Source of the DNA: Gnetum montanum
Lineage: Eukaryota > Plantae > Gnetophyta
DNA length: 64,000 nt
Assembly (NCBI GenBank): GCA_015680685.1
Contig: MNCI01002615.1
Span: 208,685 to 272,684 of the forward strand
Direction of reading: 5' to 3'
A model generated the notes under the pieces. It was not told where the DNA came from and did no database searches. It saw nothing but the letters and a program-made list of their open reading frames with translations. Every line of letters begins with the position of its first letter. Within the stretch, counting starts at the first letter, position 1. Below are positions 16,196 to 60,580 of this stretch, in pieces. The position numbers and the translations under genes were made by a program.

Positions 16196-16543
16196 TTACT
16201 CACCGCCGAGCTGCTGCTCCTGAGCGAGCGCCCACTGAAACCATTCATCGACAGCATCCATGAAAGCAGGATTGAGCGGAATCATCATGATGCAGAACTC
16301 GCGCTGTGACAGAGCACCATCGCCATCAAAATCACCCTCCCTGAGCATGACCTGCAAATCAACGTCGAAGAGCGAATCCAGACCCAGAATTATAGCATTT
16401 CTACGTAGACTCTCCAACATTATCAGTCTCGTCAGTCTCATCACAGGCTCTACCAGAAGCTTGAAGCACTTGCACATCTCCGCCATGAACTCGCCGGCCC
16501 CTAATTTATCCACCATCATAGGAAAATAATCCTCGAACTCCAT
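16196..16543 (-). CDS. KIC/PBP1/KRP1-family single EF-hand calcium-binding protein (115 aa, intronless), inside a solo LTR; possibly a decaying captured copy
   Basis: MEFEDYFPMMVDKLG..EFMAEMCKCFKLLVEP..LESLRRNAIILGL..MLREGDFDGDGALSQREFCIMM.PLNP matches the plant KIC/PBP1 family pattern (FED.LP.M..KL, ESLRRN..LG, EGD.DGDGAL.Q.EFC.LM.RLSP). ATG at 16543, stop at 16196. EF loop DFDGDGALSQRE is intact. Confidence 0.85.
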   Translation of the reverse strand: MEFEDYFPMMVDKLGAGEFMAEMCKCFKLLVEPVMRLTRLIMLESLRRNAIILGLDSLFDVDLQVMLREGDFDGDGALSQREFCIMMIPLNPAFMDAVDEWFQWALAQEQQLGGE

Positions 16544-17883
16544 GGCTTGCTCAGACCCTCCAAAAATCCTCCGCAACTTCACAAGAATTTCCTCTTCTCG
16601 TAGAGCTTGAGCAGGAGGAGGACGAGAATGAGAAATGCTAAGAGCTTTCTGTGTTAAATAACCGAGGAGAGGAGTGCAGTTGCCAAAGAAGCAGCGAAGA
16701 AATGCGAGACTTGTGCAGAGAAAGTGGGGAGAAAGAGCAGGGCGTATGAATGCAGTTGAGAGAGGAAACTGCACAGAAATTTGACTACTGTAGCGTAGGA
16801 CTTTTTTTTTACTGTTCTTCTTCTTCTTGTTGTTCCTCCATTATCTTCTTTATCATTTTGAAAACATCCACTGATAATTTCCCCATTTTTTTATTCATAT
16901 AATCTATTGATTTTAATTTTTGAATTTTCATTTCCAGTTCTCTTCTCTTATTCTTTACCAGTATCCAAATGATCAATTCCTGAATGTATTTCTAACAATG
17001 AAGAATTCCTTGCTTGTAAATTGATTCACCATTGGCACATTATCTCTTGCAATCTTCTATTTACTGTCTTTCATATATGAATTATTTCCACCAATAATAT
17101 TATGGTCTCCCCTAGATCCCATACCAATAGTATAAAATAACACATTTACATTCTCCCACTCTTATAAAATAACACATTTACACATTGAATCTTACTATTC
17201 CATGAAATGGCCAAATGTGCCAACAATTATTATATATTTATTTGTTATTCTAAGATGACTTCTTATCTTGGATTTCCCTTCTTTTTTCTTTCTATTTCTA
17301 CCTTTACTTGTGTGGTTCATAGTCATTTGATCAGTATTATTTTTGTATGGATTATTTCTATCTTTCTTAGCTATTATTACCTTGTAAGCAACCCTGCTAA
17401 CCATGAACAATCCTAAGTATGAGAACCTTTAACATTTTCCCTACTACTTGAACGTTGTAACATCTTCAATATGTTATATTATTATCAAATACTTGATATG
17501 CTTGTGTAAATCCATCCTGTATAGAGAATAAAATACTATGTGCATTCCACAAATTTAATAATGCAGATGTAAATTCCATTATGGAGTCCCATAACATTTA
17601 CACAAGTTAATTCCAAATATTACATCCTTTGGCTTGTTATTAAACTTCCATAAATTCCATAATTAATACCCTTGATTTTCTATCTTGAAAGTATGAACAC
17701 TTAAGCCAGAATGGTGACACCTTAAAACACTTTCTATTCATTTTCCTTTCTACAACATTCATGATTCATTCATGGTATGCTAGTATATTATCTTCCAATC
17801 ATATGTAAAATTTAATTTTCCCAATGCTATCTAAATCATCATCTTGAAAGTTTTCTCCATCAAATGGCATATATATGACAACA

Positions 17884-22100: not shown

Positions 22101-24648
22101 TAACCTTCTATCCTTTTCACATCTAATGTTGAAGCTACCTTTGCTAAGTCATCTACTATATAATTATCTTCTCTACCTATATGTTCTATTTTGTAGTGAT
22201 GAAATTGCTCAAGCATTCTATAGACAAACTATTTATAGGATCGTAAGAATGAACTCTTTAGTACACAATTACATTTAATTTATTCACAAACTAATCTTGA
22301 GTCTCTCTTTATGGTGATTACCTTGATTCTTTTTTCCAATGTTGTTTTAATTCCAATACTTAGAGCTTCATATTTGGCCTTGTTGTTAGTACAAGGAAAC
22401 GATAGATGAATTGCCTTGAATATTTTTGGAAAATCATCTTTTACTAGAACTACTCTAGCTCTTTCACCTTTGGAGTTACATGAACCATCAAAGTACAATT
22501 CCCAATTGCTCTCATCTTGAGATTCTTCTTTCTCCAAGTTATAAATTTTTTGAAGTGTGCAAATTTTGGTTTCAAAAGCTCCTGTTTCAACAACCTTGTT
22601 CTTTCCATTTGAAGTAATGTTCTCAACCATCAATAGTTCACTATATATGTAAATTTGATTTGGTTCCTATTTCCAAGGTAGCCACATATGTGAATAATTT
22701 GTTGATATATAACTTAAGAAATTCTGACTCTAAATTTCACTCAACAAAAGACTATGTGAATCTAATATATCTGCCACTTGAATAGTTACTCTACTTTCGA
22801 TACAGGGTTCAAAAGTGATTTCTAATAGAACATTGGAAAGTTGACTCACAATCTTTACTCTACTTTTGTCCACTTGAACAATCTTTTTATTTGATTTTTC
22901 CATAATCATACCAAGATTTTTGCACATAGATAATGGCATCATAGTAGATGTAGCTCCAAAATTGACTAAACAATTGTGAGGATACTTGTCTTTAAACTTC
23001 ATTGTCAATAGAAAAGGAGGAGCTTCCTTATCAAAAGTACACTCATAACTAGTTTTTGTTATCTTATCCATGTTGGATATATAGCTTAACTCTAAATCTC
23101 CTACTTTCCTTTTACCTTTAATGAACTCTAAAGCCTTTCTTTATGGATCTCCTATCTATAGTAATTGATATATGCTAATATTTTCCTTAACATGTTTAAC
23201 ATCTTCAATCAAATCATATTCTTCATCTCCATAAAAACCTAGTTTCTTCATCCATTTATTTAAAGACTAATTTTGAATAGTTTTCTCTACTTGATCTTCT
23301 TTACTTTTATTTTTCTCTCTTCTACTTGATTCAAAACCAATTCTCTTAGTAAATAGATCAGAAATAACATTTGGAGGCCTAGACGTAGTTCATCTTTCTT
23401 TTGATCTTAGATTATATCCATTTTCTTCATTATTGTCACACTTCTCATCTGATGATATATCTTCTTCAAAACTTGATATAGTAGAGGTATCACTAGATCC
23501 ATTGTTAGAGGATTTTCTTTCATAATGAACACTAGATAACTCATCATCAAATCCAATATCAAGGAAGTTAAACATAGCAAGATCACTTTCATCCTCATAT
23601 TCTACTAACTTAGTATCTTTATGCTTATATTTTTTATTTTTCTTTTCTTCCTTGATTTTAACTTTTGCCAAAGCTTTTTCTAGTTTCACTAATTTGTTGG
23701 ACAAGTCTCTCATTAACTATCCTTTTTCATATTCTTTACTTTCCGACTCTTGCTCCATCTTAAGATAAGATGGTCTCGGTAATGCTTTAAGTTGAGAAAA
23801 ATCTTGCATAGGAATTATCATTTTCTCTTCTCTTTTTTAAGTTGTGATAATTTCTTCATGATTCAAATTCAATTATTTTTCTAACTTTATAGCTTCACTA
23901 AAGTAGTCATTTAGTGTTATCAAGTTTGGAGTTCTCCTTAATCAAATTGAAATATTGGGATTCACAGCCTTAAGATAAATATCTCTAAGAAATTCATCTA
24001 ATGGTCTATATTATCTTTGAAAGAGCCCACAAATTCTTTAAAACTTAATGTTGAAATCTCTAATAGACTCTTTAATTCCTTGCTTAGCTTGTACTAACGC
24101 ACAATACAATTACTATTGATCTAATTAATTGCCAGATTAGGCTAAGAAAAGACTCTTCATATCATCTCAACTTGTGATACTATTGCTTGGCAAGTTTGAA
24201 TACCAAGTCTGGGCCATATCCTTTAATTTGTCACAAGTAATCTACAAGCTTGATGTTGATGTTGAACATTGGCATGAGGTAAAGCTAACTCAAACATGTG
24301 GATGTATTCTTCAGCAAAGTAAGCTTTTCCAAGAATAAAAGGCTTAGGAAAGTATTTATAAACTACCTTAGGAACATTGTTGTAATTTTGAAATCCTAAT
24401 GGTGTAACTCTTTGCCAAGGATTTTCCATCCTATTAGAAGTCATTTTGATCATTGAACTCTTATGTTTCTTTAACTTTCTCTTATGGACTAATAAACTAG
24501 ATAAAAGGGGTGACTTTCTTATCTTTCTAGTTTTTAATCCACTACTTGTTCCAAATTTAAAAACCTTATTATGTTCTTCTTCTGATGAATAATCAAGAGC
24601 TTCTTTGGAACCTTTGAAATATTCCAAACTATCAGTATGTTTGGTCAT
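19194..24648 (-). pseudogene. Tat gag-pol: gag, protease, additional RNase H, RT, RNase H/tether, integrase with GPF module
   Basis: ORF fragments: 24223-24648 gag; 22730-23071 PR (PPFLLT..NCLVNFGATSTMMP); 22280-22633 aRH (WELYFDGS..TNNKAKYEAL); 21228-21428 RT (FLDGFASYNQI); 20612-20905 RH; 19330-20521 INT (PFQQWDLDFFG, AIDYFTKW); 19194-19385 WIGPFQI. Confidence 0.92.
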
Positions 24649-31549: not shown

Positions 31550-33860
31550 CTGAAGGAAAATGATGAAAGGTTACATAAAACTTAATATCTCCATACCATG
31601 GATCATGTAATCAATTAGGAGCAAACGAGATATCATTCTCCTCATACTCTTGATCTTTAAGTGCATCATGTCTCTCCAAATTTGAGGCTTTAGCTATGAG
31701 CTTAGCAAGACTAGTTACTCTAACTAACTTGGCTACTTTCCATTGAATATCAAACTCTTGTAATTACATAACCCATTTGGCATGTTTTTCACTAGGATCT
31801 TGTAACTTGGCTAATGCAATACTAGCTAAATTAGAAATAATAACAAAAACTTTTGCATTTAACAAATAGTAGTGAAATTTCTTTAGAGCTTTAATAATAG
31901 CATATAATTGTTTGTTTTTTTTTACGAGTGAATATTCTAATTTTGCATCTTCCAAAGATCCAGACATGACAACTATAGGTATTTCACCTTGATTAATGAT
32001 ATCTTGGATTAAGATATTGATGACAGTAACATTCTTAGAAAAAGCATATAAAAGAAAATCATTTTTGTACCATAAAGAATCTAAAATAGAAGCACCTATA
32101 ACAACTTTAATAGCAAGAAAAGCATTTTTCCTTTCTTTTGTCCAATGCATATTACTATCTTTCTTAAGCATCTTGTTTAATGGTCTAACTAATTCAATAT
32201 GAATAGGGATAAATTGTCTAACAGAATTAATTTTTCCAAAGAAAGTTCATAAATCAATCTTAGAAAAGGGATAAGGTACTTCTAAAATAGCATTTACTCA
32301 CTCAAGATCAATCATAATTCCTTCTTAGGTCACTATATGACCAAGAAATTTACCACTTTGAACACCAAAAATAAATTTCTTGGCATTCAAAGTAACACCA
32401 AATCATCTTTATCTTATGAAAATATTTTTGAGGTCTCTACGGTATGTGCCTTGATCTTTAGAGAAAATAGTTAAATCATCAAGATAAATAATGATGCATT
32501 TCTTAATCAATCATTCAAACATTTTATCCATAGCTCTTTGAAAGCTAGAACTAGTGTTTATAAGACCAAAGGACATTTTAGCAAATTGAAACGTTCCGCA
32601 TTTTCTTGTAAAGGCAATCTTATATTGGTCCTTCTTACTTACTATAATTTTATTATATCCTGAATATCCATCTAAAAATAAATACATTTGTGCACCATTT
32701 ATGAGTTGTAAAAGCTCTTCCATTAGAGGAAGTGGGTAATTATTCTTAATACAAGATGTATTAAGGTTACGAAAATTAATACATAATCATATTTCACCTA
32801 TTCGTTTTCTAATTAGCACAAGTTAGATATCCAACTCAAGTATTTCACAAGATAAATAATTTTAGATTCTAAAATTTTATTTATTTTTGCCTTCATCAAA
32901 GTTTCAATCTTGGGGTTAACAAGTCTAAGTTTTTGTATGAATGATTTTGTTTTAGGTTTAGGAGCTATAGTGTGCATCATAATGAGAGAGTTAAAAGTTT
33001 TGAGATCCTCATAAGTCTAAGCTAAAACATCATTAAATTCATATAACAATTCAATCAAGTTTTGTTTTTCATTTGCATGTAAGTGAGCTCCTACTTTAAT
33101 AGAATAGTATTGTCCTTTCTTTTGAATTTGAATTATTTCTATTTCAGTTAGAATTTGCCAATTAGTATTTTTGGATATTTCTTTAGTTCTAATTTATAAA
33201 TCATCAAATAAAGCCTCTCTACTTACTAGTTCAGAAGAGATTTCATTTAAAAATATAACATCATTGGTTACATATTCTTGAGAGATTTTAAAACATTGAT
33301 TAGTAAATTCACCTTTGGAAAATAAAAATTCATAAATATGATGATGATCATCAAAAACTTGGGAAGAAATAATATTATCTACAATGACATAAAACTTAAC
33401 CTTTTTAATGATAATTTCAGAATCGCAAGCATTGTGTCAAAATGGGATGTCTAAAGTAGTGGGCATTTAAGCTAATGCATCAAGAATGTAATTTTCTTCT
33501 CTAAGAATATTTTCTATGGATATGTGATCAAATTCCTTAAAAAGCTCAAGGATGTAAGCTTTATATGCTTCCATGGTAACATCTCGATAGTCAAAATTCT
33601 CATTAATTTGATTTACTATTAGTTCAAAGTCACTATAAATCTTGAGTTTGGATATGTCATAATATTCAGCTAGCTTGATCCTATTTATAAGTACTTCATA
33701 CTTAACCATGTTGTTAGGCATAAGTTATGTGAAAATTGATCGTTCTAAGGATAGGACCTTCATGAGGAGGTATTAGCATTATTTCAACTTCACATCCTTT
33801 TATGGAAGAGACATCATCCACTCTTAATATCCAAGTGTTTAGGTTAGTAAAATCTGAAAA
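31550..33860 (-). mobile_element. Second Tat-type pol fragment (aRH-RT-RH), no LTRs seen
   Basis: aRH at 33467-33845 (WILRVDD..NNMVKYEVLI..IYSDFELIVNQI..REENYILDALA) lies upstream of RT (32511-32723 FLDGYSGYNKI) and RH (31764-32171). Confidence 0.85.
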
Positions 33861-37349: not shown

Positions 37350-40300
37350 TTTTTTTTTTTTTTTTTTTTTTGGAAAACATTCGGGAATGTATTAACAAGG
37401 AAATGTACAGAGATCAAGAAACAAAAATGGACCGGAGAAGTCTGAAGCCAAATGGCAGACAAGCAGCCCCCAGCGTCAGGGCAAACATCCTACAACACTC
37501 CCAAAAACGGCCAGAAACAGCCCCAGAAACTAGCAAAATGGCCCAAAACAGCCCCTAAACCATCTTTAGGGATGATGAAATGGCTAACCAGAATGTGATA
37601 CAACAAAACTAACAGGAATGACACAGAGAAGACTAGGGATAGCAACCAAGAAAAAAAAGAACACTAGAGCCCCAAAACACACGACGAGATACCCCCAATG
37701 CAGATGAAACTCCATGAATGCCCCCACCATTACGAGTGTCAAGGCAATCTATCGCAATGACAGTGTGGGCTGAAAGTAGCATGTAGTTCGTCCAACTACG
37801 TACGGAACTCCTTTGTGGAGACAAAAGCCACTACCTCTTGGAAGCGCTTAAAGGCCTTTGCCCTTCTAGCATGTTCCACTGCTAACCCTATACCATCGAG
37901 GTGGAGTGGAGCAGGGGCAACACGGATATGATGATGCAATGTTGACCACAGGGCCTTGCGACTGATGTGCATCTGCATATATGGGCATTTACTAGCCTGT
38001 AGCCAAGCTGTGGCATTACTCTTATGAGCCCTTAGCAATCGTTCTTGTTGTTCAGTGTCTTCCTAGGCCTCGCGAATCCATTGCTCTTCTATCTCTTCTT
38101 CCTACACCCTTTGATGCTGCACTATGTTCTCCATTTCTTCCCTAAGCTCCTCCCAAATTCGTTCTTCAAGCACAACCTAGGCCCTTGCCTCCACAACCAG
38201 TTGTTGTTGTTGCAATTCCTCAACTTCAATGGAATGATGCATTTGCAGCTCATGTAGCTAGTGTTGAAACATTTCTTCTTGTGCCTCCCACTTAGCCTAC
38301 CAAGCCTAACTCTCCTCTACCCTAGTGGCCAATGCTGCCTCTTCTCATGCCGATGCAAGCTACATCTCCACCTCCAAACAATTGACCTTAGCCGTGTCAG
38401 CACCCACATTTGTGTTAAAATGAAGTTCAACAAGTTGTCTACCCATGGCCACAAGGGCCAAGCCAACTAACACCCCCCCCCCCCCCCCCCCCAGGTAGTC
38501 TGGTAGACTACCCGTCAACTTCCTATGTCTATGATAGACGGCATGGCTCAGGGATCCCGAAGGACCCATCTGCAGCCCCTCACTAGCCACATGCCACAGA
38601 GCAAGAATAAGACCTGAGTGCCTACCTATCCATTGACATCATAGGGAAGCAAGGAAGAACTCCGAGATGTTCACCTGATGGCCCATATGAAGGTATTGTA
38701 AAAATGCAAAATGCATTCCATGAAGCTTCAACTCATCCCCTAACTAGACAAAATAATGTTCAACCAAATTAGTAGCCAACTACCAAAAGTCAGATAGGGC
38801 GGTGCATGGTAGTTGACCACAAGCAATTCTCGAGATCTAGCCCAGGAAGAAGCTTTGCGCTTCCTATAAACCTCTCGTGATAGGCAAAATCTCTTCCCTA
38901 GAGGCAGGCACACCCAACGCCCTAGCTAGCGCGTCTTCATTAAGGTCAATCCTAACCCCACTGAACACAATAGAGGTATGCTACTAGTTGTTAAAGAATT
39001 CGCCATCTAGCAAAGTCAGATCCCCCACAAGCTTGGGAAGCAGGCCTTCCACCACAACCAAATGCACTAGGTCCCACAATGCAAAGTTGTGCTCGTATCG
39101 TTCCCACGATGGTTCAAACATCGACATCGCAACCATCGCCGTTGAAGCTTCTTTCCAGAATCTACAACCTTCCGCAGCAATATTCGTCAAGAGGGGGAGA
39201 GGCACTTGTCGCAAAATGAGATTGTTCCATGCCTACCACAGACACCAAAGGATGGTCATCACCTAAGAGTCACCCATTAAAAGTAAAGGGAGCGGCAAAC
39301 AAGTAGCCTAGCAAATGGCCTAACTAAAGGGGCAAGTAAAAACGAAATGTTCCCACATCTTCGCCACCTCATTGCAAGTAGGACACATGTCCACTATATT
39401 TAATCTGCATCATTGGAGAGCTACATGCACTGACAGAGACCCATGATTAACAATGCAAAGAAAAGCCTTGATTTTTTCTAGTAGCCTCCCCTACCACACA
39501 ATAGTCCACCCCAGAACCATCAGATACTGAGATTTGATGAGCTCATGCAGGGACACGTGTTGCATCCCAAGTTGGGCCATTCGAAGAGTGTGGCGACACA
39601 AGGCCCGCCAAAGTCTCAAGTCATAACGCATGGCGACCCATTGGTTATACTTGTTTTGCATAAGCCGCACCTAGGGCAGAACATCCAATGCTCCACTAGT
39701 CAGTCTTAATAGCAATTGTTGTTGTCCCATAAGATTAAGATATGCAAATTTGAATATTCCCACCCCTCCTGCATTTCTAGGTTCAACGACCTTGTCCTAG
39801 TGAAGTAAATGCAGTCTCTATCCGCCTCTACACCCCGACTAGACAAATTGTCATATTAATTAATCCACTCTACCCCTAATTTCCAAGGGAGGAAGCAAGA
39901 GACGCAGTAAATTGAGCAATGGACAACAAAACTGTAGAAGCCAACAAAATCCTCCCTTTGTGGGTCAGAAAGTGATTGGTCCAATGATCAATACACGTTT
40001 GCAGCCACTTTAGTAAATTGACCCATTTTTGCCTCCAATTCTAGCCAAACATCGAGAAACCTAGGTACGTATCCTGGTATTGCCCAGGCAAAACCCCTAG
40101 GATACTCACAATCCCAGGCTTAACTATGTTATCAATGTTAGTCATGTAAACCATGGACTTGGCCCTATTGACCTCGAGGCCCACCTCCTCAGCTAACCTA
40201 TTCAATGCCCTATCCAAAGGCTTAGCTTGCGACACCAAGGCCGGTGTAAAGATAATCGTGTTGTCTGCATAATGCCTAGCCAAGCATTCCAGCCCATGAA

Positions 40301-42570
40301 CATTCACTCCCCAGACTCCTTCCTGCTTGCAATAATCCTATAGAGTGTCCATCACCAAAATAAACAAGTAGGGTGACAGAGAGTCACCCTGCTGTAGCCC
40401 TCTTCTTGAAGAGGAAAAACCCCAAAGAACCCTGTCCAAATCAATTGAGAACATGGCAAAGAACTAAATGTGCAAGCATAGATTGATAAAATCCTAGCTA
40501 AAGCCTTTCCTCATCATCACGTCTACCAACACCTCCCACGCCACCATGTCATATGCCTTCGCGATGTCAAATTTAAAACACAAGCCCGGGAAACGAGTGA
40601 GATTGAAGGAATGAAAAAGTTCATGAAGCATAATAGCTTGATCTTGAAGGAGGTAGCCCTTAACAAACCTCGTTTGATTATTCCTAACCAATTTTGGCAT
40701 CAAAGGTGCCAATCTTCTAACAATCATCTTGGTGAACAGTCTCAGGAGCATATTGCAGACTCCAATTGGTCAAAACTATGAAGGCTCGGTTGGACATTCA
40801 ACCTTAGGGATTAGCACAACCCGCAAACAATTGATTTCCTAACGGATCTGTCTCTAGTGGAGCATGCTATTAAAAGCATCAAAGAAGATGTTGGCCCCAA
40901 ACACATCTGTGTACTCCCTAAAGAATTCGATGGGCCATCCATCCAGCCTAGGGGCCCTTCCAGGTTTGATAACTGTCAAGGCCCACTCAAATTCCTGCAT
41001 TGAGAAAGGCTAGAGGAGCTTTGAATTGTTAGCATATGTAAGAATCATCTCCACCAGCACCAAAAGAAGGGCCCAATCCTTCCGATGCCACACATTCACC
41101 CAAAAATCATGGAATTCCTACACGACTTCAGCCAAATGTTCAATGACCCATCCATGCCTAGTAAGAGAAGGAACCTGCCTGGCCTGTTGATTAGCCTGAG
41201 CCACAGCGAAAAAAATTAGTTGGCCTATCACCATCTCGCAACCACTAGATTCTAGATCTTTGCTACCAATACCATGTTTCTTCCTGGTCCATCTACTGGA
41301 GGGCATAGAGAATGTCTTGCTCTTCATGCACCAGATCTTCACCTCTCTCCTATCTCACCTGGACATCCCGAAGCTGTTGCTCCATCACACCCCTTTGGAA
41401 CCTAAAAGAATACTTCTTCCTCTATGATCAAGTTTCCTTTTTAAGAGTACTAAGCCCATGAATGACGAGGCCACAAGCATCGTGACCGAAAGGATACTTC
41501 TCCCAAATCATGGTAACTAGAGGCCTTAGCCAAGGTTTCATGATCCAACCACACTTGAAGCAAAAGCACGAAGCAACAACATCCAACCTCCTCCCAATTT
41601 GACATATCAAAGACCTATGGTCCAAGGTCCTCCGTTCAGTACCCGTAACGCAAATGTCGTATTGAAGCAACAATGAGGCACCCATCCACACCCAGTCAAT
41701 TTGGGACATGACTTTGACATTGCCTTTCATCCTATTACTCCAGTTGTAGTTATAGTTCTTGATTTCTAAGTCCACCAAGTTATGTTGATGAAGGAATTGT
41801 AAGAAAAGGTCCACACCTGGTGACTTCGTGCAGTCGAGACAAGTCTTCTCCTAGGCATAAATTCTTTGATTATAATCCCCCACCGTGGCCCAACACCTAT
41901 GATTTGGAATCATCGCCACAATTCTTCTCAACTCAGCGAGATGTCTCTCCCATTTCCTCTTCCCGTGGAAGTTGGTAAGCCAAATTCCTAGTGAAGGTAC
42001 GTGAATAGTGATGCTCCAATTAGAAGCATCTAGGGGATGGAAACTAAATCTGGACAAAACGGCTAGGCCCCCGACACAACTATGGCAAGCCACCTGCTAA
42101 ACATGCCAATCGTTCCTTGCTAAACATGAAATTCCTTGGGTTGCAACTTTGTTTCTTGCAGGCAAATGATGTCACAGTTATCTATATGCACAATTTCTTT
42201 AAGGGCATGTGATTTAGAGGGGGTGCCCTACCCCTGCAATTCCATGTCATATTCTTCATGGTCATCCACCTACGCGTCTATGATGGACCTCCTGAAGGGT
42301 ATTTTTAAGGCCTAAATCAATTTCAAGCTAGGTTTGTCAGCTGAAAACCACTGGTGTTGGTGGGCAGCCAACTTGCCCAGCTTCGATGGACACCTTGAAG
42401 GCCTCTCTGTGGTCCATAGGGGATCGTAGAATGTCCTTCAAAATCGGGTTGGAGGAACCTCAAACAACGGTGACCCAACTCCCCTGGGGGGTGTCCTTAC
42501 TAGATTGATTAGCTTTAGGTGGAGTGGCAAGGCCTACCTCGAGGGTGGAGGGAGATACTGGGCCCTCGCC

Positions 42571-42611
<41 letters not shown>

Positions 42612-44300
42612 NGAACATACCCCATTCCTAGTGAAGGTACGTGAATAGTGATGCTCAAATTAGAAGCATCTAGGGGTGGAAACTAAATCTGTACAAAACG
42701 GCTAGGCCCCCGACACGGCCATGGCAAGCCACCTGCTAAACATGCCAATTGTTCCTTGCAAAACCTGAAATTCCTTGGGCTGCAACTTCATTTCTTGCAA
42801 GCAGATGATGTCATAGGTATCTCTATGCACAATTTCTTTAAGGGCATGTGATTTAGAGGGGGGGCCCTGCCCCTACAATTCCATGGCATAATCTTCATGG
42901 TTGCCCACCCAAGCATCTATGATGGACCTCCTGAAGGGTATTTTTAAGGCCTAAATCAATTTCAAGTTGGGTTTGTTACCTAAAAACCATTGGTGTTGGT
43001 GGGCAGCCAACTTGCCCAGCTTCGATGGACACCTTGAAGCCCCCTCTGTGGTCCATATAGGATTGTAGAATGTCCTTCAAAATCGACTTGGAGGAACCTC
43101 AAACAACAGTGACCCAACTCCCCTGGGGGGTGTCCTTACTGAACTGATGAACTTTAGGTGGAGTGGCAAAGCCTACCTCGAGGGTGGAGGGAGATCCTGG
43201 GCCCTTCGCCACACCACCCACCCCCCTCCCCTCAATTCCCAACCATCACCTCCAACATACCCCATTCCAAAGGTGCCCTTAACTTCATCGCAAGTCCCCT
43301 TGGAGGGGCCTGCAAATCCACAATCCCAGTTCATTCCTTCGGACCTTTTGTATGCTTTCGCCAAACTTGTTGCCACCCATCAACGTCCAAAGCTTTAGAC
43401 TTGACCTAGCAATTCGCCATAGACTGTCCTGCTTTCCAACAGTGCTAATAGGGGCCCCCATTGGACCTAGATTCTATGCTCCCCTTTCGTACTCCACCAT
43501 TATCCTCTCCTCCCCTGTGGGGAGGGCCAAGACCAAGTCCTTGAATAGGTCTTTTGGAGAGAGTGATCTCTAAACACAGAAGCGGGCAAAGCCCATCCTC
43601 TCCATAGTCCTAGTAGGTTTGTCCAATGCAATGAATTCCTTGAAATAAGTCGCCAATGACTAGAAAAACTCTGGCATCCACACCTCCCAAGGTACACAAG
43701 AAATGCAAATCTAGACTAGGGTGCATGAGAAAAGATCTTTATCCTAGTGTGCCCTAGGCCTCCAAGTCATGAGAGCAAGACCCCTCACTCCAAAAAACTA
43801 GGGACCCCCAACAGGACGTGGTCCTAGTCCTCAATACAATGAAAGACAAAAAGAATAAGATCCTCCAAGAGACTCCTTGCCCCCACATTATCAAGTCCCC
43901 ACATGGCAACAACCCATTTCCGAATGAGTTCAAGCTTGGGCGTGGCCCGCTTGAAACAAAATAGCTAATAAGGCCCCTCTCGATAGTCCCCAAAGCCGCT
44001 AACGGTAGCTAAGGCACCTCTAGCCAAAGAGACTGCCCACACCTCAAGGATGCCCCAAACAAACCTCCAAGGCTAGAACACCCATGTCCACCCAAGCCCA
44101 TGCCACCCCAAATCCCCCCTCCATCTTGAAAACCAATCTAAGCCCCAACAAAACCCAACCTGCCCTTGCTTATTCCATCACCATCCTACCCAATCCTTGC
44201 CGCTGTGCCTCCACTAACAGTCCCTCTAGTGCCTCCTCTGGTTCCTACTTTGGCTTCCATTCGAATTTTGGTTTAGATTGCAATGCAACAATCCAACTTG
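37350..44300 (-). mobile_element. LINE-A: near full-length decayed L1-type LINE in a PGLP1 intron, with extended ORF2
   Basis: Poly(A) tail seen as T22 at 37350-37371. ORF1 at ~44300-42260 (VPWEVW..LDKPT..RMGFARFCV). ORF2 ATG at 42259 (MKNMTWNCRG), endonuclease (VGDYNQ, TLDHR), RT (KFDIAKAYD, QGDSLSPYLF, YADN), zf-RVT at ~39530-39310, then the extension to ~37800. 5' boundary approximate. Confidence 0.9.
41989..43268. repeat. 640-bp tandem duplication spanning the LINE-A ORF1/ORF2 junction
   Basis: Units 41989-42628 and 42629-43268. ATTCC occurs at 41984, 42624 and 43264 (period 640). The copies differ by scattered substitutions. Confidence 0.85.
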
Positions 44301-44460
44301 GGCCTACATTTATGTCTTCATGTTGCCTCTATTAATGTGCCTCTATACTGACATTATTAATAAAATGTCAGTATATTATGCCTCTATTTATTAATAAAAT
44401 AATAAAATGTATCATTACACCATGGCTATTAAAAAATTACAGATAGGTAAATTACTTAAC

Positions 44461-46149: not shown

Positions 46150-46760
46150 GAGCATGTGGATTTTCATGGCCCCTTTCTAGGCTTTTGTAATGGCATACAA
46201 AAATTTAGTTTTCTCTAAGCCATGTCACTTGAGATTGTTGCTTCCAATAGAGTTCCTCATCATCATAGATTTCTTGCAATTCCAAAAGAATCATTGTCTC
46301 CTCCTCTTGACCATCCATCTCATGTTCTTGTAATGATTGCACATCATGCAGCCTTTGAACCCAATGTTGTTTTAGAAATTTAAAAGGATATTTTTCATTT
46401 GGTGGCCAACTTTTAATAAACTTTTTAGCTCTTCTCAATCCATCCTTAAAAAATCCCTAGCATCCAAGTGTTTAGAGTAATCTTGCCATATCCTTTCCAT
46501 TTCATCCCTTAACTTAGACATGCCTAGCCAAAACTTTGCTAGCTTCCACCCCCAAAAGATTCCATAGAGCGCAACAGCAAATGATGATCTGAAGCCCTCT
46601 AATCCATCACCCACAAAATGAAATCAGCACTAACCATCAAATCAGCAACCACCCAAGCACAGTCAATCCACATCATAATTCTCTCAATTTACTTTCTCCA
46701 ATTACTCCATGTGAAATCACAACCATGGATCACAGTAGGAGTTGGGCCTAGCAATTCACT
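46150..46760 (-). mobile_element. LINE ORF2 fragment (endonuclease C-half and linker)
   Basis: GCDFTWSN..IDCAWV..ASDHH, and ORF 46205-46438 ending EELYWKQQSQVTWLREN. Confidence 0.8.
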
Positions 46761-48908: not shown

Positions 48909-50149
48909 AAAGAGTTGTCATATCCCGATTTGTTGTTAAATGGTCCTCTGTTCAAGCCTACATTTCTCTCAATGTGAAAACATGAGAGGCTGGAAAATTT
49001 ATTAATAAAGATGTCAAAGTTTGGAACCATGTTAATCCATCATAATGTTCAAGCTTAGTACATGTCAAATTTTATTGTTTTGTTTTATCTACATAAGAGC
49101 ACATGGAATTTTGCTACTTGTTTGCTCCCAAAAATTAGATTTCTAATTTTTTTAAAAAAATGATAGCTATTCATAGTAGACTTACTTTTTTTCGTAGTTG
49201 TTTTTTACTGTTCACTGTTTTCTGATTTCATAGGGAATGGTAGTAATGATAATCATAATAGTCACATATAGAATTTGCCCTTTGTTTCTTTTTTTCTTTA
49301 TTTTTTTTTTGGAAATGATATTAGAGACTACCCATTCACTGTTTTAGCCTGAGAATAAAAAGAACAATTACTGTTATTATTGTTATTATTATTATTAAAT
49401 GGCTGATAATTTACTTTCCAAGATTCATCTCCCAATTATAGATATTGCACAGCCTAAAAATGCCTTACGCTGAGAAGAAGGGAAAAAATTGTTAAATCCC
49501 AACTTCCATGAACTGTGTTTATAATTATAATTTTAGATTTATTTCAGTCCCTTCTTCTTCTCCCAAACTTAGATTTGATTGCTAAAAATTAAGGCCCTAT
49601 TTTCAAACTTTCTTTGCCAAACTTAGGATGCCTGAAACTAGAGAAAAACATTGGTTGAATTTTCCGTGAGAAGTAAACCTAACTATTGTAACTCTCTCTA
49701 TTCTATGATGTGAGCTGGTTCTTATATGGCATGTAAAATACACTTAACATGCATAGTTGGTTCTTTCATTTGTATGATAGGAATATTGTATCTTCAAAGC
49801 CTGGAGGTCTCCTTGGAGTAAGCCTTTCATTACATGAATGTTTTGTACATTTTGTCATAGCTAGATTTTGTTTTATGCATGTAAATATTGTTTATTTATT
49901 TTTGCTTTAATATGCTAACCTTATTTACTTATCAGCAATTATTATTTTTTTTTAGTTGTGGAAAGAAAAGAAAAAAATCATGTATGTTTATTTTCTTTCC
50001 ATAAAATTAACCCACATGAATTATGATTAGAAGCCCTTTAGGCACTAGGATAAGCAATTCACCTAAACTCACAGTTAGTAATTAGGTGGATGATGCATTT
50101 GATTGGTGTGCAAAACCAACTTTGCATGGGTGGAATCTTGCTAAAAGCC

Positions 50150-53100
50150 TCCAAATATGTCTTCTGAGATCCAGCCATGAAATATGGCAACCAATCTCCA
50201 TCACTTCATAGGGACAACACCCAAATCAAAACCTCCTGTAGACACTCGTAGAATGGGCAGCCAACTACTACTTCATCAATTGTTCTTCCTCCGGGGCCAC
50301 CTTGGCCCTCTAGGCCTCAACCGCCTTTTCTCTCTGCACTCTCTCTTAAGCCTCACGACATAGATCCCCCCTGATCTATGTCTAAAGCTCTTCCTCCAAC
50401 ATGCAATGATAGGAAGCTTCCTACAACCCCCGCAAATGCCGCTCCCGTGCCACAGCCTCATGTGCCTACCACTCCACCTCCTAAAGCTTAGCCCTTGCCA
50501 CCTCCTCATGTTTCAAAATCTCAGCTGCCCACTAAATCTGCTTGTCAGTGCACACCTCCTAAATAGCACATTGCAATTCCACCTCATGTTGGGTCTGAAG
50601 CTCCCGGAGAATCTGTACTTCAAAGAGCCAAAACTACTACTACTACGGTGGTTCTATAACAAACCCCTAATCCAGAGCACCAACCCCAACCAACGGCCAA
50701 CTAGAATCCCTTTTTGGTGGCCCTTGCAAAATGGAAGGGGAAGATTCCCCTTCTAGAGAAGGGCGACATTGTGAATAATCTCTCACTAAACAAATGTGGG
50801 ACAACACCCCTGCTTACCCTTCCAAAGGATAGCCAAGAAAACTTTTGGTAGATTAACAAGGCACCCCATCTATAAACAATGCATGAGAGAGAAATGAGAA
50901 CCCTGGAGCTTCTGAGCATTCCCAGATTGAACAAAATAATGCTTGACAAGTTCAACCACATCTTGCCATAAAGCCGACAAGGTAGATTTTGGAACCTAGC
51001 CACTGGCTGTATTTAGCACAGCACCTTGGAAGAAGCCTTTTGCATCCTGTAAACCTTGTCTTGTTGGAAGAACCGTTTCTCCCCCAATTGTTATACCAAG
51101 ATATTCTACAATGTCTTGCTTTGTCAACCTAATGCACACCCCACAAAAGGTAGTGGCATCTTCCCACCAGAATGAGAAGAAAGATGCATCAACAAGATCA
51201 GGATCTTCCACCAGCTGAGGAAGAACTTCATCTCATCCCACTCTCTGCACCAGCGCCCACAGTTGTTGATTATTTCATAACTTCTAGCAATCTAGATCAA
51301 AGGTGGGTATATGACCAATGGCAATCGTTGTCCCTTGCCATTGTCCAAGGACCTTTTGAACAATGCAGGCCAAAGACAGGATTAGCACATTCCAAAAAAA
51401 TGAGGGCATTTTGGGCCTTCCACACAGCACAAAAAATGGCACCGACATAACAATCTCCATGCAAGCATTGCCCTGTGGTGGCAACCGCCTAGACCACACA
51501 CGTTATTGGGCATTGGAACATTAGACTGTCTCATTTGCCACACTGTAGAGAGGGTAGGTGGCAAGTACCTACAACCCCCACGCCCGAAGCAGCATGCACA
51601 CCAAGGCACCCTACATCAAAAGTGATAAAACATTTAATTTTTTCTAGCAGGTGACTCCGCCAAATCTGTCACCAACCAGGAATAGTTGGAAACTTGGTGC
51701 ACAATAATTGATGCAATGGGGTGCCCAACATTCCTAATTGTTGCACTATTTGTGTTGTGGCACAAATGCCATGCCATATCCAAGAATCTTGAGGCCCACT
51801 TCCATAACGTATACTTGTGCCTCATAATTGTAACCCATGGTCTATCAGGCTCAGTGTTTAAAATCTTATTGACAAGATATTGATATCCCATTAATGCAAT
51901 ATCATGAAATCTGATAATACCAAGACTACCTACATTTTTCGATCGTGTCACTCTCTCCCAAGAGACAAGAAGCATATGGTGTCCACCTTTGCCTCCCAAA
52001 CAAACAGAATTATGGATGATTTGGTCCCCCTCTCAATCACCCTTGCAAAGGCATGGCTACCGAAGCAGTATACCTAGTGATGGTCGATAAAACTGACACA
52101 ACCAAAAGAATTCTTCCCTTCCTGTTAAGGAAACACTTGGTCCAATGTTGGGTTCTTATTTGAAGTTGTTGGATGAGCTGCATCCAAGTTTCTTTCCTAT
52201 GCCAATAAAAAATGGGGATTCCCAAATATGTATCATGGGTTGTGCCTTGCAAAATACCAAGGTTACGGAAAATAGTGCTTCTTATCTGAATATTTTTGTG
52301 GACAAAATGAACTGAAGACTTCCCCCAATTAACAACCAAACTAATCTCCTGAGACATTCTACTCAGCCTACACAATTGCATCCACTTGAGGAATAGCCCC
52401 CTAGGTAAATAAGATTGTATCATCAACATAATGCTTGCCAATACAAGTTACCTCCCCATCCTTGAGCCCGTAGACTCCTTCCGATCTATAGTACATATTC
52501 ATAGTATCCATGACAATGTTAAAAAGATATAGGGATAATGGATCTCCCTACCTCAACCCCCTTTGAGGGGAGGAAAATCCCCAACAATTCCCATTTATTG
52601 TAAAAGAATATGCTCCTAATTTCTAAATTTGAATGCAAAGTTCAACAAATTTCAGATGTATCCCTTTTCTAAGCATGATATCTCTCAATGTCATCCAAGA
52701 TACCATATCATAAGCCTTGGCAATGTCAAGTTTGAGACACAGACCTAGGGTTCTCTTGCTTCAACAGATGCATAATTTCCTGAAATAAAACAAGGTTGGT
52801 CTTGTATAGATCTTCCTTTGATGAATCTCATTTGCTGAGACCCAACTAAGACTAGCATAAGAAGCTAAAACCTAGCAACCAAAATCTTAGTAAACAAGCG
52901 GAGAAGGGTGTTGCACACCCCAACCGGGTGAAAGTGAGTTGGCTCCATGGGGTTATCAACTTTCGAAATCAAAACAATCTTGGACCAATTAACTTCATTC
53001 CTAACTTGTCCCCATTATAGCATCATATTAAAGGCATCTAACAAATTATCCCCAATTATATCAAAAAACATTCTCAAGAACTCAACAGGCCATCCATCTA

Positions 53101-55500
53101 GTCCTAGGGCTCTATTTGATTACATAGATCGGAGAGCCTGTGAGATTTCCTACTTAGTAATAGGGGCCACCAAGTTCCTATTTTGTGATGGTTGCACGAC
53201 CTTGTTGATGTTGACAAAGATGGGAGATATATCTCCCTTGGCCCAAACTTTAGCCCAATAGTCTTGTAGGATGGTAGCAACAGCATGGTCTCCAGTTACC
53301 ATCCAATCCCCTTGGTTGAGGCCATGGATCTTCTTAGTTGCCATGTTTTCCTTAGCAATTGCAAAAAAGAATCTTGTGTTACAATCTCCATCCTTTAACC
53401 ATTTCGTGTGGCTTCACTCCTTCCAATATTGTTCCTCTTCCACCGACAGCTATTGCAACTCCAAAAGGACATCATGTTCCTCTTGTCCCAAAGACTGCCC
53501 TTGCTCTTGGAGCTCCTAAATCCTATGTAACTTTACCGACAGCTCCTCCCCATATTCCTTAAACGCATATTTCTCACCTTTTTGTTGATCTTTGATTCTC
53601 TACTTCAAGGTGGTCAACACCTATTTCAGAAAATCTTTAGGGTCCAATCAGTTCAAATACCCTTTCCAGACGTAATAAACCAAATCAGCCAACCAAGGTT
53701 TGGTCAACCATGCTCTCTCAAATCTAAATAGTCAGGGTCCCAAGGAACCATCCTTACAAAAAGAGCAAAGTAAGGGCCTATGATCTAAGGCCCTTCTTTC
53801 CAACCCCTAAACACATATCTATTGCTTCAACAACAAAGCAGAGCTGACCCACACCCTATCAATTCAGGACATGTCACAATCTTTGCCTTTCCTTCTATTA
53901 CTCCAGGTAAATTGACAACCCATGATTTGTAGGTCCACCATATCAAAATTTTTGAGGTACTTAAGGCTTCTTGACTACCAAGCCCATCGGTCTTCTCCCA
54001 GGGGAACATCCGCTAGTTGAAATCCCCAATAATCATCCAGGTTGACTTATTTGGGATTTTCATTGTGATTTTGTGCAGTTCCATTAGGCGTGCCTTAGGA
54101 TCTTGTGGCCCATAGAAGTTGGTAACCCAAATATTCTAATCAACTAGGATAACTGAAATACCCCATCTAGAAGTTTCAAGCAATTACATATTAATGCGAG
54201 AAAGAATGGCTAGTCCACCAGACTTCCTGATAGAATCAACAAACACCGTCTGCCACCCAAACTAATCCAAAATTCTTTTCTATGCCCCAACTAGTTTGTC
54301 CTGCAAGCACACCATATCTACTTTACACAATTGAACTAATTCCCTCAAGGTACTACTTTTGTAAGGGTTACCTTGTCCCCTGCAATTCTAGAAAATGACA
54401 TTCATGGTTTGCTAGTGGACCGTTTCTTGTATACCCCTTTTAGAATAGTCTGGGTCCCCAAATCAATCTCCTGTTGAGTTTTCTTGATCCTCAGATCCAA
54501 AATAGAAGGTCATCTCATTTTTTTGGGACTAGCCAGCACTTCAAACCTACATCCTCCTCTTGTTTTACTGCCTACAGAAAAGGTTCCAAAGGGGGCTTGG
54601 ATGATCCCCTTTCGGCAAAAATCCAATCATTTAAAGGCAGTGCACAAAATGACAAGGATCCCTACCCCACCGGTGGCATGTTCTCCACATCTTGCAAGGT
54701 TTGCAATGGGGAGAAATGATTTTGGGAAACAACAGCCCTACCCTGGTCAAGAGATTGTTGTCAAACAGAAGGAGAAGGCAGCACAATAGAGGGGGATGGG
54801 GTTTCTGGGACAACCTACTTTTGTGTCTGTCCAGCATTGCCCTTCTTACCCTGTCTAGGTCTATCCCCCTGCTTCATCAAACCACGACCTTTCCTTTTAA
54901 ATCTGCAATCCATTGTGTCATGATTCACCTTGCCATAAATTGCACAGCCTTTGGTAAGGTTCCTCTTCAGGGGAGGTTGCATGTTCAACTTTTCATATTG
55001 CACTATAAGGAGCTCCTCCCCCTTCGAGAGCTCAAGCTTAATTTTTGTAACAAGTTCCACCAATGAAAGAGGTTGCCAAACACAAAAATGAACAAAATTC
55101 ATCCTCTCAATGGACATGATGAATTTATCAAATGCAAATAAATTCACCGAAAAACCAGCAATGGTACACAGGAATTCTGACCCCTAGAACTCCCACGGCA
55201 CAAAATCTGAATCCAAACTGGAGCTCATGAGAACAGATTAGATTCACAATGTGCCCCCGCCTGCCAAGGCATTAATGCTAATCCTTAGGCTCCAAAGAAC
55301 CACAACACACACACCCCCCCCCCCCCAAAAAAAATAAAACCTGGTCCCTAGCATCAAAATCAAGAAAAACAAACAACAACAAATCACCCAAGAGCAAGCA
55401 AACCTCCACTCCCACCTTCTTCTAGGTTGAAGTGACCCAACGCTAACCAGATTCCAAGTTAGGCCTAGCACCTACAGAGATCAAACGGCCATTGAAGCTA
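50150..55500 (-). mobile_element. LINE-B: decayed L1-type LINE with extended ORF2 (may extend 5' to ~56900; no poly(A) tail seen)
   Basis: ORF1 with a degenerate zinc knuckle (54815-55147 ..QYEKL..CAIYGKVNHDTMDC). ORF2 ATG at 54405 (MNVIF*NCRGQGNP), endonuclease (IGDFN), RT (KLDIAKAYD, GDPLSLYLF), zf-RVT at ~51600-51490, extension at 51340-50200. Confidence 0.88.
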
Positions 55501-57257
55501 GGCTTCATCACATGCAACCCTTCAGGTGCAAGTGCATGCATTTTCAAATGAAGACCACACCCCTGACGAGAGACCTCATCCACACCAGCAATACCAGGCT
55601 TCCATTTCTCTGTAACATGCCCATTCTATCTGTCCAAGAAAACCCACTTAGGCTCAAACCCTAGAATAGCATGTTTGCCAACGACAACATAGGAGGCCTT
55701 ATCCCTCTCAACTGCAACCCCTAGTATCGGCCCCAACAGGTGTCCACTCCACTCCTTCTAGAGAACACACACACACACACACATTTGGTCTGCCACAAAC
55801 ATTAGTAACCCAACTGAGTTTATAGGTGATAACCCGCATGTTGTTGTCACCTAGACCATCTGAAAGGCTAGGAACCAGCACATCTTCAGCTTTGCACCTA
55901 TGCCACCACTGCCTCTATTAGCTACTCAGGCCCTCAAGCTTTATAGAGAAGCCTGCAACACCATGGACATTCCTCCCACATTTGAACAAGTTATAGCACC
56001 CTTTCAGCAAGACCGTGTACTTTGGTTGCTAATCATGGGCGTTGGATAGGATATTTTTCTTCCTTTGGTACATGGTAAGAGGAACTTCAATGCCACAAAA
56101 TTCTTCTCTTGGTAGAGAGGGGACTGCACTGCATTCAAGAATATCCATATTCATTTGACTAGAAGCAAAAAGGGGAGTAATTCTACCAGGAACAAGGGGG
56201 TTGCCAAATGTCATTGATTTCTTCCCAAATGACATCCAAACCACTACAAATGCTCAAGTTTCAAGGACCTCCTTGCCCACTCTCTGGCAATGTGTGGCTG
56301 AAGTTGTGGAGAGATTCCTGGTTCAATGAGCAATTTGTCCAAGTTGGAGTCCATTTTTCCCTCCTTAAATGCCTAAGGCTAGGTTGCAGGGTCAATATCC
56401 TAATATTCTTCCTTGCCTTCAGAAATGGCAACTGACAAGCAATCTGGTTTCATGCTGGCCTTCTGGCACATTGTGAGGGTTGAGGTCAACATCACTAGAC
56501 CTCTAAATGTTGCTGCCACATCATTCACCTCGGCAATTCTGCCTCTTACTCTAGGAGATGGTCGCTCACATCAAGAGTTCAAGGGGGTTCTGATATGATG
56601 CAACCTAGGGTTGTGGCAAGTCAAGAGGATTCTGATATGCTGCAGCTTGGGCATGCGGCCTCAGAGTAAGAACAACAGGATGAGGGGGACAATCTCAGAG
56701 ACAGTCCATGGGAGGACAGGAATTCATGTCTGAGGACAAGGTGGACTCCAAAGGACAGGCTGAAGCTTGCCACGAAGATTAGTATGATCTTTCTACCATT
56801 GAAGAATCCCTCCATAGGAATATTGAAGTAGAGATTAGCATCCATGTAGAGAAGGAAAGGGAAAAGTTCAAAGACAGACCAAGCAATGAGATGCACATCC
56901 AGAAAAGTTTGAATGAAGACATGTCCTAGAAAAACAGGAAAAATTAGACCATATGATAAGAGATGTGAAACAAAAGGTTATTGAAAGATTATAAACAAGG
57001 GAATGATTAAGAACATGCACTTCAGGAAAACACAAATGAGGATCTTATCATGGAGTGTTAGGAGTTTTAGTTTTCGCTACAGTAAAATGATCCTTAAAGA
57101 TTTGACATTGCAAGTTTACATGCATGCTACATGTTACAGAAAGCAAAAAACTTAAGGTTGGCAAACATTTGTGTTGCAAATGACGATCTTGTTATACTAC
57201 TCCTAAAAATGAGCAGCTTTGGATTCTAGACAATTTTGAGTCATAGGCAGGCCTGGT

Positions 57258-58229: not shown

Positions 58230-60580
58230 GAAGCAGCATGGAGCCTTATGCTCTTCTTCCCAGGTGAGAGAATATTTCTGACCAACTTATATGGACCTCA
58301 GGCTTGGACAGATCGGCTCCACAACCTTCTCCTCATCACCTCAAAGGTAGGCAACCACAAGGCCTAGATTGTGGTTGGAGACTTCAATCAGAAACTGTAC
58401 AAATGGGAGCAAGTAGGGAGGGGCATTATGGAACCTCAAGGAAGTGAACTATTCCAGAAGTTTCTCCCCAATTTCAGCCTTGTTGATCTGAACATTCAAG
58501 GCTGCAAGTTTACATGGACCAATAACAAGAAAGGGGAGGACTGATTCATGTCCAGAATAGATAGAGTTTGGGTGAGTGTGGCCATGATGCTTATTAGACA
58601 TATCATCATGATGGGATTGGAGTCACAAGCATCCGATCACAAACCCTTTGTTTGCACCATCGGTCAACCCCAGGGCAAGATCCCTAGGGGCTAGCCATTT
58701 CAGTTAAAGAGAATGTGGCTGAGAAAACACTAGCTGATATGGTTCATCAGGTTTGGGCTTAACACCCTAGAGTCTATGATACTAGAGACTTCCTCAAGCA
58801 GGGACTGCAGCAGGTGAAACAGGGGATAAGAGCCTAGGCCAAACAGGATAGGTATAGTTTCAAGTTCCTCAAGTGGAAACACATTCTCAAGCTCCAAAGG
58901 GTCCAACAGTTACAGCAGGAGGGGCAGGACCTACAGTCAAATGAGTATGAAACACTTCGGGAGCTCCAATAGCTTAATCAAGATGAAGACCTTTACTAGA
59001 AGGAACAATATTGCATCCAGTGGCTAAAGGAGGGAGACCGTAACACTAAGTTCTTTGCCACAGCCAACGTGGCCAAAAGATTCAACACCATGACCCTCTT
59101 GGTTGAGGGGGAGAGTCACATCACAAACCTGCTGCTTATTGCGTGAACAATGCAACAATTTTCGAAGGATATTTGGTGGAAGCAGAATGTGTCCCCTATC
59201 TCCATCCTAATACAAAGGGTTCTTGCACAAAGAGATAACCATAGACTTATTCAAAACATCACTAAAGCCAAGGTCTTGAAGGCCATCTCCACTTTGAAGT
59301 CTGGGAAAGCACCACAGCCTAACGGGTGGCCTGTCAATTTCTGTGTTGAGTTTTTCAAGGAGCTAGGACAAAACCTTGTAGATGCTTTCAACCTTATGCT
59401 TCAGTGGGGCCAGTTGAGGAAGGAGGTCAACTGCTCTAGAGTTGTTTTGGTGCCCAAGGTTAATCCCCCAATGACGTCTGCAGACTTTTGGCCCATTGGG
59501 GTTTGTAACACCCTGCTGCAAATCTTTTCTAAGATCCCAATTCATAGATTACAACCTTTGATACCTATGCTAGTTGGTAGACAACAGGTGGGATTCACAA
59601 AAGGGAGGCATATATCAGATCAGATTCTATTCCTACATGAGGCCTTGCGCTTAGTGAAAAGAGCTGTGCTCCTAGGTATGTTCCTCAAATTGGATATAGT
59701 TAAGCCTATGATATCATTGACTAGGACTCTCTGGGCCATATCATGCTGCACAAAGGCTTCCACCCCAAATTCTTGGACCTTGGTCTTCAAATGCAATGCA
59801 TGGGGGCTTTCTCCTTGATATTAACAGACAGCTTTGGGGGTTTTCCTCCCTCAAGAGGGAACTGCACTAGAGGAATCTATTGTCACCTTACCTATTGATT
59901 CTGGCAATGGATACTAGGATGAAGGAGTGAGAGGCCTAGAAGCAAAGGCATTTCATGCATTGCAAATCACTATGCAAATGACACTATATTAACTACGAAG
60001 GCTACCGTTCCACAGGCCCCAGTCATCAAGAACACCTTGCCAAGAATGAGCAAGGAACTACGATTGGATGTTAGTTGGGTAAAATTTGTCAAACACTTTG
60101 TTCTAACCAACATTAACATGAAAGAAGGATAATTGGGATGCTAGGGATTGGCCAAGGGTGATAAGAACATGTTTATTTGGGGATCCCCATGTTTCACTGG
60201 AGACGGATTGGTATGTGGGCTGGTTTTCTCGGCAGGATCCAAGCAAGGATTAGGCACTTGACCTCAAAATTCTTAACTAGCAAAGGAAAAGTCCTTCTAG
60301 TGACCATTGTTTTGGTGGCTATGGTGAGATATGTGGCCTCCATCGACAAAGTTAACTAGATCGTTAGGAACTTCATTTGGTCTAGCGGGAAAGGAAGCCA
60401 CAAAAGTCATCTTGTTTGTTGGGAAAAGATCACCTGCTCAAAGGTGGTAGGGGGTTGGCAGTGCCTTATTTTGAAGATGTGCTTCTCTTAACACATAATA
60501 ACCTGATGAAGAAGATCATGGAGATCGAAGATTGCTCTAATGATGATGCTCTGTGGGCAATTGCCATCAATCATGAGTAC
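58230..60580 (+). mobile_element. LINE-C: 5'- and 3'-truncated L1 ORF2 (endonuclease-RT), antisense to PGLP1
   Basis: TNLYGP, VGDFNQ, FTWTN..SRIDRVW, SDHKP; ORF 59150-59818 (KAPQPNG, FWPIGVCN, KLDIVK); 60177-60359. Ends abruptly at the LINE-D tail. Confidence 0.88.

Follow-up and report, generated by a model that had tools for sequence, protein, structure and literature searches.

Which protein parts follow the zf-RVT region in the second open reading frame (ORF2) of a decayed L1-type long interspersed nuclear element (LINE), and did these parts belong to the element? This question is raised by LINE-A, which lies in a 64,000-nucleotide stretch of Gnetum montanum DNA (NCBI GenBank assembly GCA_015680685.1, contig MNCI01002615.1, positions 208,685 to 272,684 of the forward strand; this whole stretch is referred to as the window, and positions are those within it). 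We report that LINE-A ORF2 probably encoded, without RNase H and in this order, zf-RVT, a conserved domain that we call module X, a variable linker, ~100 amino acids (aa) of charged helix and a probable decayed J domain of ~65 aa. The extension was compared with further LINE copies in the same window, and its parts were searched against protein and structure databases. Queries in Pfam and other databases were individual stop-free pieces, and read-through translations (with X at stops) were used only for local comparisons. For the profile searches, alignments were generated with MAFFT and rows were trimmed until they agreed with the read-through alignment.

LINE-A occupies 37352-44330 on the minus strand, as judged from Pfam matches and a GC-rich block in the GC profile; the 5' boundary is approximate and was placed at the GC drop near 44330, and searches for a target-site duplication came up empty. 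The reverse transcriptase (RT; 39897-40769) was matched by RVT_1 on two pieces (40497-40769 and 40044-40337), the 91-aa piece with E=1.1e-8 and 35.4 bits, which exceeds the gathering cut-off of 29.6 bits, and the second piece carries the YADNTIIF box. In the APE-type endonuclease (EN) region (41431-42872), the start of which is duplicated in tandem, the Exo_endo_phos match (42705-42872, minus strand; E=0.0042) falls under the gathering score because the piece comprises only 56 aa; the EN is homologous to that of LINE copies B and E in the window (E=1e-35 to 1e-44). The zf-RVT region (39323-39560) was recognized by Pfam on the piece CRLNIVDMCPTCNEVAKMWEHFVFTCPFS (39323-39409, minus strand; E=0.015). 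With an APE-type EN N-terminal to the RT and with RVT_1 followed by zf-RVT, LINE-A is a plant LINE of the L1 type, and this copy is dead. The observed/expected ratio is 0.35 for CG and 1.37 for TAG in LINE-A; together with the stops of the interval 37799-39409, these values point strongly to C>T decay of the methylation type.

A tandem duplication is also present inside LINE-A (window 41984-43268), where 43268-42624 and 42628-41984 are 89.6% identical over 646 bp. It spans the end of ORF1 and the start of the EN. Its joint is marked by an N and a run of G, and it may represent an assembly gap or a genuine duplication.

The zf-RVT frame of LINE-A (codon tops at 46498 minus 3k) passes ILWCLW*AWNNLIL, in which AWNNLIL corresponds to the usual W.W.ARN..IF terminus of plant L1 ORF2, and runs on the minus strand for another 479 codons to a TAG at 37798-37796. 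The gap from there to the poly(A) (37352-37381, a 30-nt T-run on the plus strand) is 415 bp. These values agree well with the ~480 codons and ~430 bp of the initial annotation, made from the sequence alone, which had assigned the extension to the element. Reading the frame past the TAG at 37798-37796 leaves 37382-37795 as the 3' untranslated region (3' UTR), with the true end of the ORF somewhere between 37796 and about 37739. From AWNNLIL a stop-free piece of 82 aa (38987-39232) reaches the start of module X, a domain of ~210 aa (38588-39229) delimited by tblastn to the copies B, C and D. It is followed by a Gly-rich linker without conservation among the copies (38318-38587), a charged helical stretch rich in E/Q/R/A and free of Pro and Gly (38008-38317), and a J-domain-like segment (37993-37799) that had been overlooked; the latter is 35% identical to the tail of copy B at the same relative place. 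As initially described, RNase H is absent, since neither RNase_H nor RVT_3 gave a Pfam match on any extension piece.

Between zf-RVT and 37799 the frame has 19 stops in 537 codons (17 TAG and 2 TGA), and the other two frames of the same interval have 24 and 41. Given these counts the open frame alone is weak evidence and could be due to chance. Of the seven stops in LINE-A module X, five align with Gln or Trp codons of another copy and are therefore consistent with the C>T/G>A decay that had been proposed for them, as is the share of TAG among the 19.

Stronger evidence comes from the other copies. Using tblastn with the LINE-A extension as query, module X was recovered in copy B (51394-50807, minus strand; 34% identity, E=2e-26; module X at 50810-51394), in copy D (62155-61469, minus strand; 34% identity, E=5e-23) and in copy C (55810-56417, plus strand; three pieces with 24-54% identity, sum E=1e-11). 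Module X of copy D shares one frame (61475-62413, minus strand) with zf-RVT, which Pfam recognized there with E=1.3e-17, whereas in copy B one frameshift lies between the two. Copy C, the fourth copy of module X in the window and not previously listed, is 5'-truncated (55783-56417, plus strand) and starts just past zf-RVT, as expected if module X constitutes a 3' part of the LINE transcript. No nucleotide similarity between the copies was detected with blastn, and RT identity among the lineages that carry the extension is 33-48%. The element thus includes the extension, and LINE lineages with similarity at the protein level only have it in common, which bears out the earlier view that B and D are strongly diverged and that the module is a lineage feature. 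Conserved columns of module X are LW.L, FF, F.GV.I.L...LG...E..LP..GL..A..FF.G, G..P..L..W..V.LV.HYFVQ.G, HF, VN.P.FL.SL and HSGLIL.LW.

With respect to the copies themselves, B appears to be full length (49950-55300, minus strand), with an ORF1 match at 55299-54974 and the EN from 54255, followed by RT, zf-RVT, module X and the tail, and with an A-rich end near 49950. (CA)n microsatellites are located at the 5' edge of copy C (55765-55783) and in the A-rich 3' end of copy D (60600-60640). A fifth L1-type LINE, E (58239-60344, plus strand), comprises only EN and RT, which are 33-36% identical to those of LINE-A; copy D was probably inserted into E, since E terminates where the 3' end of D begins.

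The initial annotation had also named neutral evolution of the module as a result that would speak against its interpretation. In module X the proportion of nonsynonymous differences (pN) is well below that of synonymous differences (pS) in all three comparisons between these diverged copies (Nei-Gojobori), viz. 0.40 and 0.80 for A-B (Fisher p 2e-15), 0.47 and 0.82 for A-D (3e-14) and 0.46 and 0.70 for B-D (2e-5); pS is saturated in these comparisons. Nucleotide identity at codon positions 1, 2 and 3 is 0.55, 0.65 and 0.32, respectively. For RT and EN the same copy pairs gave pN 0.32-0.46 and pS 0.65-0.88, and module X has therefore been constrained at the protein level about as much as the enzyme domains. 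Some observations weigh against a coding extension: the zf-RVT frame of LINE-A is hardly more open than one of its alternatives (19 vs 24 stops), protein-guided alignments push pN down somewhat, and all four copies are heavily decayed, with an intact ORF in none. On the pN and pS values the extension evolved under purifying selection in the zf-RVT reading frame.

The part downstream of the linker was compared between LINE-A and copy B, the tail of which (50085-50546, minus strand) comprises the charged helix and the J-like segment and ends in ..RLLARFHPCKVG. The two tails align without gaps over 146 aa (Smith-Waterman score 98, compared with 36.7 +/- 4.8 for shuffled sequences; 0/300 shuffles reach this score, z about 12.7); tblastx between the tails gave no match. 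Over this alignment pN is 0.53 and pS 0.88 (p=2e-9). Conservation is highest at codon position 2, and shifted-frame controls are weaker; for the charged helix part the values are 0.525 and 0.910. The first ~100 tail residues of A and B contain 38-46% E/Q/R/K/D and 0-3% P+G and are rich in E/Q/R/A, in keeping with a long charged helix. A long coiled coil had been suggested here. Its composition and its homology between A and B hold, but a crude Fourier test revealed no 3.5-residue peak in the helix of either copy, and we therefore prefer the term charged helix to that of a proven coiled coil.

What, then, is the end of the tail? J domains are four-helix modules that switch on Hsp70 chaperones and have a His-Pro-Asp (HPD) tripeptide between helices II and III. 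The final part of the tail reads CPYMQMHISRKALWSTLHHHIRVAPAPLHLDGIG...AFKRFQEVVAFVSTKEFRT in LINE-A and CPYEVMEIGCHISWLDLRRHIWRLLARFHPCKVG in copy B, and the LINE-A segment has the pattern CPY..M.I....HIR.....H-L-D-G..AFKRF.E....S..E.R. At the HPD site LINE-A has H-L-D (CAC CTC GAT) and copy B has H-P-C (CAC CCA TGC); the tripeptide is intact in neither, all three residues are kept by the two copies jointly, and CTC (Leu) in LINE-A is a single C>T step from CCC (Pro). The J-domain hypothesis was fixed before a profile of the A and B tails was searched against the PDB, where the best single-stretch match was the J domain of DNAJB12 (2ctp_A; 14.7 bits, E=0.31). This alignment stays in register for 30 residues and places HPDK opposite H-L/P-D/C-G/K. 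Since the family had been predicted beforehand and J domains make up a small share of the PDB, we take this as moderate support for a J domain, short of proof, and the terminal ~65 aa are most likely a decayed J domain. That it put host Hsp70 in contact with nascent ORF2 protein or with the LINE ribonucleoprotein is a reading we regard as about evenly balanced, perhaps slightly favoured.

Several results weigh against the J domain. Its call is under every standard threshold, and E=0.31 is the sole positive. DnaJ (PF00226) gave no Pfam match on the pieces from A (88, 65 and 62 aa) or B (47 and 44 aa) with E up to 10. In phmmer searches against the PDB, A alone preferred the clathrin heavy chain (E=0.058), and neither B nor the C-terminal 35 aa of A matched anything. 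The 65-aa J-like piece of A had no usable match in the ESM Atlas (LAGLIDADG noise at 0.79). An AlphaFold2 (AF2) model of the J-like piece is helical with a predicted local distance difference test score (pLDDT) of only 48.6. Moreover, the segment was not found in C or D, either by six-frame hmmsearch of the window with the A and B tail profile or by comparing the C and D tails with those of A and B, where similarity was not significant. The same tail profile found no protein match in a search that was confined to a length window and from which long proteins were hidden. Together with the broken HPD in both copies, these results speak for the alternative that the terminal segment is a fast-evolving helical C-terminus that resembles a J domain by chance, which we consider a serious possibility, albeit not the probable one. 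Against it stand the in-register J-domain match, HPD(K) included, as the top single-stretch hit of the A and B profile, the low likelihood that chance would hit a family named in advance when this family is a small fraction of the PDB, and, in our reading, the correspondence of AFKRF.E....S..E.R...D in LINE-A to the pattern of J-domain helices III-IV.

The identity of module X is the next question. The initial annotation had labelled it as Transposase_32-like, and this label was not borne out. At least 20 stop-free pieces were run against Pfam and only RT, EN and zf-RVT were matched, leaving module X, the helix and the J-like end without assignment. Specifically, Transposase_32 (PF20167), ATHILA ORF1 (PF03078), PMD (PF10536) and Transposase_28 gave no Pfam match on nine pieces from copies A-D with E up to 1 or 10; for module X this is a weak test, as its pieces are decayed and at most 82 aa. 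We also searched 1.84 billion representative proteins with a profile of the N-terminal half of module X. Neither a plant protein nor a true relative came up, and the sole match, a 3728-aa bacterial repeat adhesin, was dismissed as spurious. The profile of the C-terminal half gave no protein match, again within a length window that hid long proteins, and an 80-aa piece of this half from copy D returned nothing usable from the ESM Atlas. AF2 modelled the same 80 aa as four helices (pLDDT 63), and the C-terminal half of module X is hence predicted to be helical.

Module X might alternatively be a remote relative of PMD, Transposase_32 (Athila ORF1) or Transposase_28, that is, an accessory domain of long terminal repeat (LTR) retrotransposons captured by the LINE. 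Its conserved motif G-x-x-I-x-L-x-E/D-x(4)-L-G-V/I..(E)..LP resembles the PMD hallmark TLEDV..LLGLP, and the helical C-terminal half fits as well. In addition, the extra ORFs of Tat elements encode PMD-coiled coil or Transposase_28-coiled coil (PMC4408406), an order of parts like that of module X and the charged helix, and PF20167 occurs in Athila extra ORFs (PMC11728184). The lack of a Pfam match to these families in any of the four copies speaks against such a relationship, as does the absence of a relative among the 1.84 billion representatives, which should hold many plant PMD and Transposase_32 proteins; the C-half profile found none either. The sensitivity of all these searches is low, since the pieces are decayed and at most 82 aa. 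We therefore judge this origin possible but rather unlikely. Because it has no detectable relatives, module X is a candidate for a new domain family, or else a very remote branch of PMD or Transposase_32.

Whether the extension was translated as part of ORF2 or as a separate downstream ORF3, which ribosomes would reach by reinitiating or by reading through a leaky stop, depends on the junction behind zf-RVT. A conserved stop between zf-RVT and the domain had been named beforehand as the sign of a separate ORF. Each of the three full copies does have a stop immediately behind the zf-RVT 'VW' (TAG at 39310 in A, TAG at about 51491 in B and TGA at about 62194 in D). This, and the one frameshift that copy B requires within about ten codons after ALIF, ahead of module X, count against a fusion. 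The stop precedes W.W.ARN..IF, the motif at the canonical end of ORF2, and A and D both have this motif in the same frame, for which reason we read the stop as decay. Moreover, the codon is not the same throughout, being TGA in D and TAG in the other two, which fits hot spots at CAG and CGA; the shared stop is thus probably the result of repeated hot-spot decay of a CAG/CGA codon and not a true terminator, and it may otherwise be a conserved leaky stop. At one column of module X a TAG is likewise common to A and D, where B and C have Gln. In LINE-A no stop interrupts the 82 codons leading from the ORF2 end motif into module X, and a single tblastn alignment of 296 colinear codons between A (39529-38588) and D (62413-61475) keeps to one frame from zf-RVT through module X, with the two junction stops of D being sense codons in A. 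On this evidence the extension was likely translated as one ORF2 fusion, as inferred in the initial annotation, even though no intact copy has been seen, and a separate ORF3 appears improbable.

The barely more open frame might suggest that the extension has no role in the element and arose by a one-off 3' transduction or a nested insertion, or that it is non-coding 3' UTR. This is very improbable, given that four copies, including the 5'-truncated one, keep it in the same order beside zf-RVT with protein-level similarity only and with pN far under pS.

On the reading of an ORF2 fusion that ends in a J domain, we suggest how the extension could have acted. The J domain would recruit host Hsp70 to the protein-RNA particle of the LINE and stimulate the ATPase of the chaperone there, which could help the large ORF2 protein to fold, assemble or be remodelled. 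Module X together with the helix might form a platform for binding or oligomerisation, in the manner of the extra ORFs for PMD-coiled coil in Tat LTR retrotransposons. In its fullest form the proposal is that ORF2 of an old, diversified group of plant L1 elements is a single fusion with a PMD-like accessory domain, a charged helix and, at the C-terminus, a J domain by which the element supplies a co-chaperone for Hsp70 of its own. We offer it tentatively, our confidence falling a little short of even. If true, it would describe a retrotransposon polymerase that carries its own chaperone recruiter, and LINEs and Tat LTR elements would have acquired the same module of accessory domain plus coiled coil, independently or by exchange.

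Outside the LINE copies the window also contains a 192-aa ORF (16199-16774, minus strand) with an EF-hand pair (EF-hand_8, E=7.5e-9) and remains of LTR retrotransposons, with RT_RNaseH at 31767-32171 (minus strand; E=2.8e-11) and RNase_H at 22283-22633 (minus strand; E=2.6e-4).

The usual view of LINE ORF2 is that of a stable plan comprising EN, RT and a Cys-rich end, to which RNase H is added in some plants. Full-text literature searches for LINE or non-LTR elements with a J domain or DnaJ revealed no description of such an element. A survey of L1 elements in 503 genomes reports RNase H as the sole extra ORF2 domain in plants and does not mention DnaJ (PMC5203782); plant L1 LINEs with RNase H after zf-RVT were, according to its citation, described by Smyshlyaev et al. 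(2013). LINE-A resembles these elements in being of the L1 clade, with an APE EN, RT, zf-RVT, poly(A) and an acquired C-terminal ORF2 domain, but its addition is not RNase H, is ~480 codons long and has three parts. Such an extension, retained under selection among lineages with RT identity of 33-48%, would imply that plant LINEs can keep large accessory modules over the long term.

The Tat lineage of Ty3/gypsy LTR retrotransposons provides the second comparison. Its extra ORFs for PMD-coiled coil or Transposase_28-coiled coil appear first in a gymnosperm Tat lineage (Ustyantsev et al. 2015, PMC4408406), and extra ORFs with these domains are present in both gymnosperms and angiosperms (PMC4408406); PF20167 was found in the extra ORFs of Athila (PMC11728184). 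As in LINE-A, a conserved accessory domain is followed by a coiled-coil-like stretch in a plant retrotransposon. The Tat extra ORFs are separate and often antisense, whereas the LINE-A parts lie in frame behind the RT and are followed by the J-like segment, and no homology of module X to PMD or Transposase_28 was found.

A precedent for the mode of gain is the insect R1 LINE with a viral-type superfamily 1 (SF1) helicase domain at the C-terminus of ORF2 (PMC4686597). There too a whole foreign domain was gained at the ORF2 C-terminus, although clade, host and domain differ, and C-terminal domain capture by LINEs is therefore already known in kind.

For the function, the counterpart is found in viruses: J domains such as those of the polyomavirus T antigens are encoded by a selfish element to harness host Hsp70. 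The T antigens belong to a DNA virus and have the J domain at the N-terminus, whereas the candidate J domain of LINE-A, for which support is weak, is located at the C-terminus of a retrotransposon polymerase. If it is indeed a J domain, it would link retrotransposition directly to the Hsp70 system of the host and represent the counterpart, in a cellular parasite, of the viral J domains.

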